Positions 2,809 through 9,300 of a stretch of DNA of 64,000 nt are shown here, in pieces (position 1 is the stretch's first letter; every line of letters starts with the position of its first letter). The stretch covers positions 1,178,001-1,242,000 of the forward strand of contig NW_026781981.1 of the NCBI RefSeq assembly GCF_031769215.1. Direction: 5' to 3'. The position numbers were made by a program, and so were the translations under genes. The notes under the pieces are model-generated. The model saw nothing but the letters and a program-made list of their open reading frames with translations, searched no databases and was not told the DNA's origin. Source of the DNA: Ylistrum balloti (lineage: Eukaryota).

Positions 2809-3117
<309 letters not shown>

Positions 3118-3987
3118 TAGTATTAGGTAAATTTGACATATAAGTTACAGTCACACCCATACCATCGTATCTGTAGGCTCACACATCACACTGTAACACA
3201 TATTTGTCTCATCTGTAACAGTAGGTACCCTTAACTTTCATACCGTATTGTTTTATATTGTCTTTGAACTATACAAGACAGTATCACAATAAGATATACA
3301 CACATTACCACTAGATTTATAGATGTAATTGCCCGATGGTATATTATGTACATGCAGGACAATACAATATCGCCTACTTACAAATGATACTAATACATGC
3401 CTACACCTGTTAAAGCTACAATGTTCGCCTGACTCTTTTATATTATATTTAAAAAAATCATGTTTCTGGTTCTTATATGTAGCAAATATACCTTTAGTCT
3501 AATCTTAAATAAAAGATTTTACTGCGAGGATCATTAATCAAATCATATAAACTCACAACTTACCCAGCAGGTCCATACAAACAAAACCAATCACTATGTG
3601 ACCATACCACTAACAAGATGGAAAGTAATATAAAACACTGAAATAGCTTGAATGTTTTTTCATAATATAATCTCAGTTTTAGGTAAACATGATATTGCAA
3701 GGTATGCCCTTACATGCATAAATTAGAACATGAACGAATAGTTTAATGTATTGTCACTTTCAGGCAAAACGTGTAATATTCTATAAGAGAGTTTCGTATA
3801 GCAATAATTCAAAAGTGTAATAATGTTGGGAGATACATGTTATGTTTATAATGTTAACAAAATGATTTATATAGATGAAAATCATTTAAAATTGCATTAA
3901 CAATAAAAAAATGTCCAAGTGCGATATTCTTGTTTTATAACAAATTGGAAAACAGGGATACTAAAAGTTTTGTATATTCATTTTCAG

Positions 3988-4317
3988 GTATGGTTCCAAA
4001 ACAGAAGAGCAAAATTTCGTCGAAACGAACGGAATATGATGGCTCAAAGGGGGAACCTTTACGGCCGGCCGGAAAACACGCCAATTGAGCAACCCATTAC
4101 GCCCCGCCCATCATCAATGAACACTGACAACCTGTCATGGTATGCCCCACCCGCGTACAGTCCCTCCACATCATCAAACAGTTGTGCTCTGGCGAACCAC
4201 TCCTACACCCCTCCTCCACCAAACATCGGCTCCAGCATTGCATGTCTTCGGCTCAAGGCCCAAGAATACAATAACGTTATGCAACATAATCCTTACGGAC
4301 ATCAAATGCAGCAATGA
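3988..4317 (+). CDS. Prrx: Prrx homeobox gene, last coding exon (helix 3, EQPITPRP/DNLSW motifs, OAR domain)
   Basis: Acceptor ttttcag at 3981-3987. VWFQNRRAKFRRNER (Q50), EQPITPRP..DNLSW resembling PRRX1 EQPIVPRP..DYLSW, OAR motif SSIACLRLKAQEY, stop TGA at 4315-4317. Confidence 0.95.
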   Translation, partial: VWFQNRRAKFRRNERNMMAQRGNLYGRPENTPIEQPITPRPSSMNTDNLSWYAPPAYSPSTSSNSCALANHSYTPPPPNIGSSIACLRLKAQEYNNVMQHNPYGHQMQQ

Positions 4318-4479
4318 CTAGGCGGAGGGGGTGTTGGAGTGGGTGGGACTAACCTTGCGGGAGGGGCACTGGGAGGGGAAAAACAGACTTATGGTAGCCC
4401 TTACGGGCAGTTTGGCCAAGAAATTAATCATGGACTTCAAACGCAAGACAATGATAACTACACAATTGCTCAGATATAA
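4318..4479 (+). CDS. Prrx: Putative stop-codon readthrough extension of Prrx (53 codons + TAA)
   Basis: TGA-CTAG context. In-frame LGGGGVGVGGTNLAGGALGGEKQTYGSPYGQFGQEINHGLQTQDNDNYTIAQI, then TAA at 4477-4479. 15 Gly codons use GGC/GGA/GGG/GGT. Translation itself is inferred. Confidence 0.65.
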   Translation, partial: LGGGGVGVGGTNLAGGALGGEKQTYGSPYGQFGQEINHGLQTQDNDNYTIAQI

Positions 4480-6327
4480 CTGATCAAGCAAAGTTACATA
4501 ATAAGCTTCTAAAACCATGTTGCAACGTGTTGGTGTTACCATAATCGTTGTCAAAATATTTGGAAGTCATGATGTTTGCTGCAAAAACAGCTTGGATCTC
4601 AATCTGACAATTTCATTAAATACGACAAAGGAAGCTACTGGAATTGTTGTAAATTCCATGGACTTCTACATCGATGCGTCATTGATATTCCGGAAGTTTA
4701 TGAAATAATTTTGATGAAAACTTCCGGTTGTGATATGCCAAGAAATATGAAAGGAAAGAGCTGATCTGTTGACGTTTTGAAGTGGAACTTTTTACAATTA
4801 GGCAATAAATGAAAAGTATTGACAACCAATAAGCCAAGTTATGGAAATTAAATACGGGTGTTACTTTTACAATGCATAATGTCACCCCATTCAAGTGAAA
4901 GGATTTAAGTTCTCATTTAAAATTCCATCCAAATTCCAGTATCTTGGCAATTTCATATGATTAAAACTTTCTGATATTGTACTGAAAGGTTTGACAAAGC
5001 TAAAGATGATTATCATCAACCATAAAAAACATCACTGTCATATTAAACGACTTCATCATTTGTTTCTTGTACAGCACAGCCAACTAAAAGTTAAATCAAC
5101 GAACAAAAACGAAAATACCGAAACCCTCAGCAACATTCAAAAACCCTTGCATCGCCAAAAATATCTGGCGGCGCATGATTCAGAACGATTTTTGTGTCTA
5201 TACGCCGTCTTCCTAGAGTGTTAAAGACATACTTGCCCAGAGATTCTTGTGCTGATAATGTCACGTGATGTAGATCTGCAAGTGAAAGGTATTCTTAGCA
5301 ACACAGTAATCATCCCAGCTGATTCCGTCTCATTGACATTATCATCGAAAATATCATGCGCGATAAAGAGGAGAAACTCCACGTTGACAGTATCGAGATC
5401 ATCTGTAGAGGTCAAATGGATCAAGTGTAAATCACAGCATATAGTCAAGGATATTTATCTTGATAAAAACACAATTTTAGCCTAAATAAGCAGTTTGTAT
5501 ATAACTTATTCAAATAAGTTGTGCAATATTGATACTACATGTCTATCTGTTTCAAATTTGGTTAATTCATATGGTATTTATGCCTGTGTAATTTCACTAA
5601 AATTATTCTTACATGAGCTGCTGTAAAATATATGGAAAATGGCACAGATTTTGAATTCATAAGTTTGTCATATCTTCAGTGTGGTGTACACAGTTTTAAA
5701 TAGTATCAGGGATATGACCATAAGCAGATTTAGAACATGAAGCTTGTCGAAAAAAAACCACCGCACGTTTATTGTTTTTCTCTGATTTTGAAGACATGTT
5801 ATTTAGACCGTTTATTTATTGATATTATTTTCATTTTTAATCGCTGAAAGTGCTAAATCTCTTCGATACACTGTTTGGTGTTGTATTCATAAGTAAAATG
5901 TGAATATGAGAGAAAGCATGGAGAGCAAATAAAAACTGAAATCCTTGCTAAGTGCTATTGGTGAAATGGGGTACACGTATCATTACGTACGAGGAGGTAA
6001 CATTATTGTAAATAACATTGAATGGAAGTGATTTGTGTCACCGCAATAATACTTGTTATACTTTGATTGTTGGGTATTTCGGTCACCATGTGTATGTATG
6101 AGGATGAGTGTGTTACAAATGTTTCTAAAGTGAAAATGGACATATGAATGTGTATGTTTTTTAAATGGTGCACAAGAATATTGTGTGAAAGCTGACGGAT
6201 AAAGTGTGGTCCCTAAAGGACAGTATTATCACTGTTGTATACATCTCCTTACTGTTGTAAATGACTGTAAACTATTTTCATACGTTTAATATCGTTTAAT
6301 ATCTTTATTGATATGCATAATTATAAA

Positions 6328-6333
6328 AATAAA
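6328..6333 (+). terminator. Candidate polyadenylation signal of Prrx
   Basis: AATAAA followed by a T/GT-rich tract (gtcttttgtttt), about 2 kb after the stop. Not the only AATAAA downstream of the stop, so the site is a best guess. Confidence 0.45.
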
Positions 6334-9300
6334 TCTTTTTGATATAAATTGTCTTTTGTTTTAAAAAGAAATCCTGGTCGGTGCTTACACTTTTCGCCCT
6401 TCCCACAGAGAGCAACACCGTTGAATATGATAGAAACAAATGTGTAAATTCTTACCCCCAAAGATCAGTTTTGATTATAATTTTCTGGTTACGATTCTAA
6501 ATATTACTATTGCATCGATTTATAATAATTTGTACAGGGACACAATTTTAGCATAGAATGTTTCATGTGAATTCTTTATGAATATCATTAAAAATACAAC
6601 GAAACCAATTGATACGAAAAACAAAACTCAATTTATTTCTCCAGGAAGTTTCAAAATTCGCTTTCACATAAATCTGTACAAATAATAGATTGTTTCTTTG
6701 AAGAAAGATACAGAAATCTTGCACGTTCCTTTGAAGGTGAATAAGTCTGATAATACCACTGCTCCACATCAGATTAATGTTTCAGAAATATATCGAAGAT
6801 ATCAGCTTACTCGTCCGGAACCCTGATATCATGGCCGATTGTATTTTCTCACGGGCGATTGGAAAAATAGTCACATGCTTCCGGCGTTGTAAATATTTCA
6901 ACAAATGAAAGGTTTACAGCAGAAAAGTACTCTAAGGGAAGTTGTGAAGGAATTGTGCATATATTCAGGTTAGATTAAGGAAAATCATGAAATTCAAAAC
7001 ACCGATAAAAAAAGTTACTTGCGCAGAAAGAGAGAGTTTTTGATTGCGAAGATAAGCTTTTTAATACTTCCTGTAGTATTTTCGAAGATTGTATATACAG
7101 ATGAACCCGATGGCTTGTCTCGTAAATAACCTTTTTAATAGGCATGTCCTCAAACTATTTTTTGTTAACATTCTGAGATGAATAACGGCAACACAGCGTC
7201 ACTGCTCCTCTCTTGTATGGACAATGCATATGTCTCCACAAAGAATGAATCTTTAGATATGGGAGTAGAGTAGTATTTATAAACTCCATCGACCAATATA
7301 GGAAATAGGACGTATCTTCATAATTGTTATGGTATCTTTATAGAATTTCGGAATTCGATTCTCCAAACAAACGTGACAAAGTTACGAGGTCCTCTTCCCT
7401 AGAAAGTGGGAATTTCCCGGATACTAGAGTTACCTTTCACATTTACATCCATCCGCAACAAGAGCAGTATATAAGTAAGATGTTTAATAATTGTTGTAAA
7501 ATAAAGTTGAATTTTCCTCACAGTTGAAATGACTTGATATCTCGCTTCTTTTGTGTTACCTTGATTATGAATTATATTAACTGTGTTTTTACTTATCTAA
7601 GTATTTCTCTTCTCAGCTATATCACTCGCCGCCTATGTGTACTGCCAACTAACCTAGGTTATTATCAACAATCACTTTTCTTTCTTCATGTTCAGCGTAA
7701 ACATTCAATTCATACATGCTCTATCAGAAATTGGGTTTTAAGCATACCGGTCAATAATGTGTTAAAATCATTATTGAAAATTCATTTGAAATACATAGGT
7801 ACATACAACCTGTGGAAGCCAGTGACGTTATAACACCATAGTGATATTTAAACACACTACGAAAAAATTTGACCTATAGATAGACATTTTCTTTGTGACT
7901 TAAAAATCCGTCAACACTCTGTGCAACAGAATACAAAAAGGTGTAGTCTTTGATCATTGCACAACATGACATCAACATTATTGTTTTTAGACTATCAACT
8001 AACCACTGAAGTATCCCTTGCGGAAATGTTTGTCGATCTATTATGACGTATATATTAACTCTCGCTAATCACATATGACAGATGTTCTTGAAACATCATG
8101 AAAATAATATTACATAATGGTATTACTACAGCATTCGAGATATTACAATGCATTTGGGAAATACGATTTCTTTAGAGTAGCTTTAACAAGTTAGACAAGC
8201 CGATTCGAATTTGTTTCTTTGCTAATTTAATAAAAAGAAACATGTAAGTTATACTTCATAAGCTAGTAGTGAACATAAGTTCTGACATGTTATAGAAACC
8301 CTCTATTGCGTGGCATCACCTACCATTAAAATAAACATTGAGTAGATAAAAACGCGCCCGATAATTCCCATATATTCTTACTAATGAGAGTGGATAAGAT
8401 CCCTATACGCTTGCTTTCTTTGATTCCTAGGACTAAAGTTTTATCTACAGGACGGTGTTCGTTTCATATTCTCTGATAACACTGCCAATTAAAGAGGTGA
8501 TCTGTGAGGGCCCGGTCTTCAGCGCGCGAGCACGAGACTGGCATTCCCGAACAACTGATCTGGACTTATTTTCAAAAAAACCTTTGTGGATGGTAGTAAT
8601 TTTGGAAGAACCACTTGAAATTTTGAATCTGATACAATATAGACAAATATTGAATTAAAATGTATCAAAATGATGTGCCTACCTTTTAGAACTCGTCTGT
8701 GATTTAAGGACCTACAATGTAAATTGCTGAAACCCAGGATGAGAAAGGTAAAAAAAAATATCGAAATTAGTCGAAAGAATGTCACAATATAGACAGGAGA
8801 AGCGCTAACCGTATGATTGATTATGAATGACAATAGCAATTTTCGACATTTTTTCATTATTTGGTATACAGTTATAAATTGGTATTATACTTGATGATAA
8901 ACAATGGCTTACTATTTTACAAGGCTTTGTTCTCACAACTTTGTTAAGTCTACGCAGCTTTCACTTTTGTTTTCATATGACCTTGTTTCCATGGATTTCT
9001 CTTTATGTCAACGTTGGTCTATATTTTTCCTTGTTAGATGTTATCAAATTTCAGATGAATTAAAGGATATATTCACAAAATGAAATGATCATTTTCATCA
9101 TCATTTGATTATGATGAAAAAAGATATTTCGAGTTGATTTCTAAGAATTGTGTATAACAAAAAATATTTCATTTAGACACAATGCTATTAATATAACGAT
9201 ATATCTTTATTTCATTTTTCATTACAAGATATTATTTTTCAAATGTGAATCAATTTGGTCGTGTGACATTGAAACAACACTTACCAGCAACGTTTTTCCA

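Follow-up and report, generated by a model that had tools for sequence, protein, structure and literature searches.

Probable programmed UGA readthrough of the homeobox gene Prrx in scallops

We analyzed a stretch of 64,000 nucleotides of the Ylistrum balloti genome (contig NW_026781981.1, positions 1,178,001 to 1,242,000 of the forward strand; hereafter the window), which carries two coding exons of the paired-related homeobox gene Prrx (Table 1). Exon 2 is bordered by an AG acceptor (2922-2923) and a GT donor (3109-3110). The presence of a paired-like homeodomain interrupted by a phase-0 intron, together with a C-terminal OAR motif, places the gene in the Prrx family, and a protein search with the last exon returned molluscan Prrx proteins (79-89% identical) and vertebrate PRRX1/2 as best matches. 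The translations of exons 2 and 3 correspond exactly to Ylistrum balloti XP_060064249, annotated as "paired mesoderm homeobox protein 2-like", and the 90% cluster at Argopecten irradians XP_069121311 includes 277-aa proteins of Pecten maximus, Mizuhopecten yessoensis and Ylistrum balloti. Since the gene extends over 25-28 kb in other scallops, exon 1 is located beyond the window. The scallop and pearl-oyster genome annotations that we examined list only a Prrx form of 276-277 aa.

Table 1. Features of the Prrx locus and its downstream region in the window (positions counted from the first nucleotide of the window).
Feature	Position	Strand	Remarks
Prrx exon 2	2924-3108	+	Acidic/basic linker and homeodomain positions 1-45; Pfam Homeodomain, E=1.4e-14
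Prrx last coding exon	3988-4314	+	109 codons, phase 0; homeodomain helix 3, linker, OAR, C-terminus ...NPYGHQMQQ
OAR motif	4228-4272	+	Residues 81-95 of the last exon; Pfam PF03826, E=1.8e-6, above the curated cut-off
First Prrx stop TGA, proposed recoded codon	4315-4317	+	TGA in 11/11 distinct molluscan loci examined
CTAG readthrough context	4318-4333	+	CTAGGC equals the human OPRL1 hexamer (PMC4132726); 16/16 nt invariant in four scallop genera
Candidate in-frame readthrough extension	4318-4476	+	53 codons; variable Gly-rich first 20, then a near-invariant Tyr/Gly/Gln-rich part
G3+ quadruplex-type motif	4359-4378	+	Inside the G-rich tract
Second stop TAA	4477-4479	+	Same position but TAG in Argopecten, Pecten and Mizuhopecten
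Conserved downstream block 1	5116-5412		Probably 3' UTR or regulatory element
Conserved downstream block 2	6210-6347		Probably 3' UTR or regulatory element
Conserved downstream block 3	6642-7120		Probably 3' UTR or regulatory element

The last exon of Prrx ends in ...CAG CAA, followed by TGA and then by CTAGGCGGAGGG, and the frame remains open for 53 codons. The original prediction had drawn attention to this TGA-CTAG and to the open frame that runs from it to the TAA at 4477-4479, and its description proved accurate when we re-read the region. Our recount likewise gave the 15 Gly codons reported for the extension, and both the SPYGQ within the extension and the NPYGHQ upstream of the stop that it was said to echo are present. 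The fall in GC content claimed near the second stop was measured as a change from 0.50-0.57 (up to about position 4450) to 0.33-0.37 beyond. The extension contains no in-frame ATG and the coding signature described below starts at the stop, so that separate initiation is unlikely.

Elsewhere in the window, a frame that follows a stop triplet runs on for at least 53 codons in 3.3% of cases, and about 0.2% of TGA triplets precede CTAG. Given these background rates, a single open TGA-CTAG case per genome could be due to chance, and a genome of about 20,000 genes could hold one or two of them. It is the cross-species data that lead us to conclude that the Prrx extension is not such a chance case.

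We aligned the window with the Prrx loci of three other scallop genera, Argopecten (L010), Pecten (L011) and Mizuhopecten (L012), each of which reads ...ATGCAGCAA TGA CTAGGCGGAGGG, as in the window. A readthrough extension had been predicted to show a conserved TGA-CTAG, an intact frame, a dN/dS below 1 and a conserved second stop, and all of this was observed. TGA-CTAG is shared by the four scallop genera and recurs in three more lineages of bivalves; the extension has 53 codons and zero indels in all four scallops; dN/dS (NG86) ranges over 0.08-0.39 for frame 0, against values of about 1 for the two remaining frames; and the second stop keeps its position in the four scallops though its codon differs (TAA vs TAG). 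The alignment has zero gaps from the splice acceptor to the second stop, and the invariant fraction of its columns is 0.68-0.84 through position 4476, dropping past 4479 to 0.32 and then to 0.20, with indels.

Several analyses point to selection on the encoded protein. Among the four scallops, the counts of variable sites at codon positions 1, 2 and 3 are 7/7/20 for the extension, where the excess at position 3 has a binomial p of 0.002, and 5/2/58 for the last Prrx exon, while frames +1 and +2 of the extension contain stops and have Nei-Gojobori dN/dS values scattered around 1. Between the window and Argopecten, the extension differs by 18 synonymous and 7 non-synonymous changes (Fisher p=2.4e-8). 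When 25 random substitutions were simulated in the extension, a stop was created in 60% of trials, and 0 of 100,000 trials remained stop-free with at most 5 amino-acid changes, the number observed. The closest pair, Pecten and Mizuhopecten, gave p=0.083, which is not significant taken alone. At the residue level, 43 of the 53 positions are invariant in the four scallops, with the changes concentrated in the Gly-rich first 20 and the rest almost fixed. These comparisons show that the extension is under purifying selection as protein in four scallop genera. It should be noted that synonymous divergence is reduced in the extension (dS 0.18-0.75, compared with 0.44-1.7 for the upstream exon), so that nucleotide-level constraint accounts for some of the conservation; the 16 nt that follow the TGA are invariant although dS in the upstream exon reaches 0.44-1.7 among the same scallops.

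This lower dS, together with the presence of several strongly conserved non-coding blocks in the same 3' region, would fit an untranslated 3' UTR element whose open frame is a coincidence. The three blocks downstream of the second stop (Table 1) provide a direct comparison, as 0.6-0.96 of their columns are invariant in the four scallops and they align almost without gaps. Variation in these blocks is flat over the three positions (27/21/22 and 62/63/64), in contrast to the 7/7/20 of the extension, and inspection of both strands revealed neither codon periodicity nor a consistently open frame in any of them; the blocks probably represent conserved regulatory or 3' UTR elements of a developmental gene. 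Since equally conserved sequence at the locus is flat, the periodicity of the extension is not the pattern that nucleotide-level conservation produces here. An untranslated element also fits poorly with the excess of synonymous over non-synonymous changes (p down to 2.4e-8), with the lack of any indel or stop in four genera, and with a second stop that is fixed in position while alternating between TAA and TAG. We therefore consider this explanation very unlikely.

The Prrx 3' UTR also harbors a perfect 10 bp hairpin, formed by CCGGAAGTTT (4690-4699) and AAACTTCCGG (4718-4727) around an 18-nt loop. All four scallops show conservation of its arms, though not of its loop; one base pair is preserved in Mizuhopecten by a double change from G-C to A-T, and Argopecten has one mismatch.

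Taking into account the stop context and the selection on the extension, we consider it very likely that scallop Prrx undergoes functional programmed UGA readthrough, producing a 331-aa isoform with a disordered Gly/Tyr/Gln-rich tail past the OAR motif. Most ribosomes would stop at the first UGA and release the annotated 277-aa protein, and the leaky UGA-CUAGGC would allow a fraction of them to accept a near-cognate tRNA (Arg, Trp or Cys) at the UGA and to translate the 53 in-frame codons as far as the conserved second stop. The resulting tail would consist of a flexible Gly-rich linker and a conserved Tyr/Gly/Gln-rich segment. Because it directly follows the OAR, it would most likely alter C-terminal regulation, through OAR autoinhibition or partner binding, and any such change would affect a fixed or regulated fraction of Prrx molecules. 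That the long form differs in C-terminal regulation is the most likely outcome by analogy with VDR and Drosophila Drifter. We infer from sequence the passage of the stop by readthrough, as well as its efficiency, the residue inserted and the function of the tail. A second isoform of this mesoderm-patterning factor may be absent from the scallop and pearl-oyster annotations.

The tail looks intrinsically disordered in structure prediction, as AlphaFold run on the four-scallop alignment of the extension gave a pLDDT of 52 and no secondary structure. No Pfam match was found in the scallop, Pinctada or L001 extensions (the latter two are described below), and a search of the extension against 1.84 billion representative proteins returned no homologue, only two long low-complexity proteins (E ~1e-4). 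At the RNA level, no stable or conserved helix was detected past the stop (z-score 0.52, covariation term 0, one compensatory pair). The first 70 nt past the stop (4318-4387 in the window, and the same place in the other three scallops) contain about 50% G, and a G3+ quadruplex-type motif lies within 65 nt of the stop in all four, beginning 9 nt past it in the three scallops other than Ylistrum. This motif was not found in the other CTAG-bearing lineages (Pinctada, L001 and L002), and a role for it as a readthrough stimulator is speculative.

An A-to-I editing event that changes the UGA to UGG (Trp) in some transcripts would also account for the conserved in-frame extension, which would then be translated without ribosomal readthrough, and RNA editing is common in molluscs. 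The target A, however, has a 5' G neighbour, which ADARs disfavour, and the folding analysis (z-score 0.52, covariation term 0) detected no stable or conserved duplex around the stop. Editing would moreover leave the strict conservation of CTAG unexplained, all of which makes it a most improbable source of the longer protein.

Alternatively, the stop could be removed by splicing, which would make the extension an alternatively spliced coding segment, either through a short excision of the retained-intron type or through a 3' splice site placed after CTAG, whose terminal AG would serve as acceptor. Splicing is how vertebrate PRRX1 acquires its C-terminal isoforms, PRRX1a and PRRX1b being two proteins that differ in whether alternative splicing has retained or removed the OAR. 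In scallops, joining the phase-0 exon 2 to the AG at 4320-4321 would instead shift translation to frame +1, which contains stops in three scallops and has a dN/dS of about 1 or more, and neither a plausible in-frame donor nor a polypyrimidine tract adjoins the stop. In addition, both the coding signature and the 16-nt invariant stretch start at the first base past the TGA, an exact in-frame contiguity with the stop for which splicing has no need. Removal of the stop by splicing is thus highly improbable. Under the readthrough that we favor, scallop Prrx would resemble PRRX1a/PRRX1b as a member of the same family that makes two proteins differing only C-terminally around the OAR; unlike the vertebrate pair, both scallop forms would keep the OAR and the long one would add its tail by recoding.

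We then compared the scallop stop with that of other molluscan Prrx loci. Three lineages carry CTAG after the TGA: Pinctada imbricata (L013; CTAGGC, 63 codons, chance of staying open 0.021), an ENA metagenome contig (L001; CTAGAT, 84 codons, chance <0.003) and a Logan contig (L002; CTAGAG, 34 codons, chance 0.079). In the remaining loci, TGA is followed by CTAT and 11 codons (Mytilus-like, L003-L006), by CGG and 6 codons (oyster-like, L008), by ACG and 5 codons (Solemya velum, L009) or by GAC and 21 codons (abalone-like, L007), lengths for which the chance of staying open is within 0.28-0.75. In these loci, a long open extension thus accompanies CTAG, each being absent where the other is absent, and the extension is a lineage-limited trait, as judged from its absence in the oyster-like, mussel-like, Solemya and abalone-like sequences. 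A tree of the last exon groups the scallops, Pinctada, L001, L002 and the Mytilus-like and oyster-like loci in one pteriomorph clade (96/92) that is unresolved inside.

The extensions are barely alignable between orders, sharing only a leading Leu and patches rich in Tyr, Gly, Ser, Pro and Gln (YGSP in scallops and L001), and the CTAG motif is retained in lineages whose extensions barely align. Within the pearl oysters, a second Pinctada-like sequence available as protein only (P0008) aligns with the P. imbricata extension over about 40 residues with two frame-keeping indels. The oysters served as a negative control: they lack CTAG, and the sequence past the stop is unlike between Crassostrea gigas and the C. 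virginica-like L008. The C. gigas cluster (P0124, P0151, P0153 and P0199) is polymorphic past the stop, with IDPV and IGPV. A post-stop motif x-D-P-V/Y, seemingly shared by Solemya, C. gigas and heterodonts, was considered and dropped, as the major C. gigas variant has G for D and the C. virginica-like locus is unrelated.

A different arrangement is found in heterodont clams. Their Prrx proteins (Mercenaria, Ruditapes, Mactra, Mya and about 12 unannotated sequences; P0157, P0158, P0159, P0018, P0133-P0137, P0160, P0169, P0182, P0203 and P0209) read ...YGQMTQ, then Arg, then LDPYEH or LDPYDH and a stop, so that Arg occupies exactly the position of the pteriomorph TGA and is followed by a conserved 6-residue tail. 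The presence of this Arg and of the conserved LDPYEH indicates that sequence past the pteriomorph stop is translated and selected in the sister lineage. Arg is also among the residues inserted at UGA by near-cognate tRNAs, and the Leu-Asp of the heterodont tail is what the TGA-CTA-GAT of L001 would encode after the TGA. We infer that the leaky stop and the heterodont sense Arg could be just one TGA/CGA substitution apart.

These homologues also bear on whether the UGA could encode selenocysteine, with the longer Prrx as sole or main product. Two observations would be in line with this, namely the strict conservation of UGA as the stop and the protein-level selection on the frame that follows it. 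However, homologues carry Arg or a true stop at this position and not Cys, many molluscs terminate at the UGA without a conserved extension, and a redox-type motif around the UGA is absent. A SECIS search over 3900-8000 (3.7 kb downstream) gave no match at E<=10, and selenocysteine insertion does not need CTAG, which is diagnostic of near-cognate readthrough (PMC4132726). Selenocysteine is therefore an exceedingly unlikely explanation.

The context of the Prrx stop matches a well-described signal. The original prediction named UGA-CUAG as the leaky context of AQP4, OPRL1, OPRK1, MAPK10 and VDR, which is correct (PMC4132726, PMC5868278). UGA_CUA alone gives about 1.5% readthrough, the human UGA_CUAG genes tested give 1.3-6.7%, and OPRL1, with the hexamer CUAGGC, reaches up to 31%; 12 nt past the stop are sufficient in the human genes (PMC4132726, PMC5868278), and a recent mutational scan found modulating positions up to +27 (10.64898/2026.07.14.738498). 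The 16 invariant nt past the scallop stop fit the range of these readthrough-modulating positions.

As in human OPRL1, OPRK1, AQP4 and MAPK10 (Loughran et al. 2014, PMC4132726), the scallop UGA is directly followed by CUAG, and the OPRL1 hexamer CUAGGC is identical in scallops and Pinctada. Further similarities with the human genes are the conservation of the motif and adjacent nucleotides at the nucleotide level, the conserved second stop, a protein-level selection on the extension that is strongest towards the C-terminus, and no need for an RNA stem. The scallop gene differs in encoding a homeobox factor, and not a receptor, channel or kinase, in a different phylum (Mollusca), in having 53 extension codons where the human genes have 13-30, and in its G-rich tract with a quadruplex-type motif. 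Experimental assays of the UGA-CUAG motif have been confined to vertebrate cells.

With VDR and Drifter/Vvl, scallop Prrx would share the gain of a C-terminal readthrough tail by a DNA-binding transcription factor, and in both of these the tail changes transcription-factor activity (PMC5868278, PMC8417969); their functional effect is known, while the scallop tail is a candidate module. VDR also has the UGA_CUAG context and an extension of similar length (67 aa), but its extension is only weakly conserved and limited to Old World monkeys (apes and human among them), whereas that of scallops is conserved across four genera of one family. Comparative surveys have found abundant readthrough only in Pancrustacea, that is, in insects and a crustacean (Jungreis et al. 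2016, PMC5100048). The same comparative signature detects those cases and scallop Prrx, and stop-to-sense switches among orthologues, comparable to the heterodont Arg, occur there as well; unlike the scallop stop, the insect sites are not CUAG-defined.

A full-text literature search turned up no description of readthrough for Prrx or for any cellular gene of molluscs, in agreement with the original prediction, whose author knew of no such report for Prrx or in this lineage. The mechanism is already known; what is new is the gene, the phylum and the series of true stop, leaky stop and sense codon. For insects, functional readthrough of cellular genes has been amply documented; in vertebrates it is known for only a few genes, almost all of them with UGA-CUAG, and the Prrx locus would bring this signal, down to the OPRL1 hexamer CUAGGC, into Lophotrochozoa. 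This would imply that the target of the signal is a property conserved in eukaryotic ribosomes or release factors. Prrx also offers a natural series for the gain and loss of extensions, in which the same position holds a true stop in some lineages, a leaky one ahead of a long tail in others, and in heterodonts a sense codon ahead of a short tail.

Regarding the origin of the leaky stop, it is conceivable, though in our view somewhat doubtful, that Prrx readthrough is ancient in autobranch bivalves and that the UGA-CUAG was already read through in the ancestor of pteriomorphs and heterodonts. As joint parts of the same tentative reconstruction, heterodonts would have fixed the extension as constitutive through a single UGA-to-CGA change, oysters and mussels would have lost it, and scallops and pearl oysters would have lengthened the tail into a Tyr/Gly/Gln-rich module tuning OAR-dependent regulation. 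If this were true, UGA-CUAG would be a signal common to Bilateria, kept in one developmental gene since early bivalves.

Finally, some observations concern the gene calls and gene models that were consulted. A metagenome scan with a profile of the last exon yielded only generic paired-like homeobox matches and no further bivalve Prrx. In eight Logan/ENA gene calls (P0003-P0006, P0008, P0013, P0017 and P0021), all made on contigs of animal DNA, the terminal Gln is followed by W, which implies a TGA translated as Trp, and the DNA retrieved for W-continuing calls has TGA at that position under the standard code. Such false W extensions provide handy access to the post-stop sequence of unannotated eukaryotes, and here they supplied it for many unannotated molluscs. 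In one heterodont gene call made under code 4, the stop after the LDPYEH/LDPYDH tail is again TGA. The Mya arenaria protein (P0018) skips part of the homeodomain, with ...DAFV joined to WFQNRR, which is probably a gene-model error. The freshwater mussel Sinanodonta woodiana has two Prrx genes (P0138 and P0139) with consecutive locus tags on one contig, probably the result of a tandem duplication.
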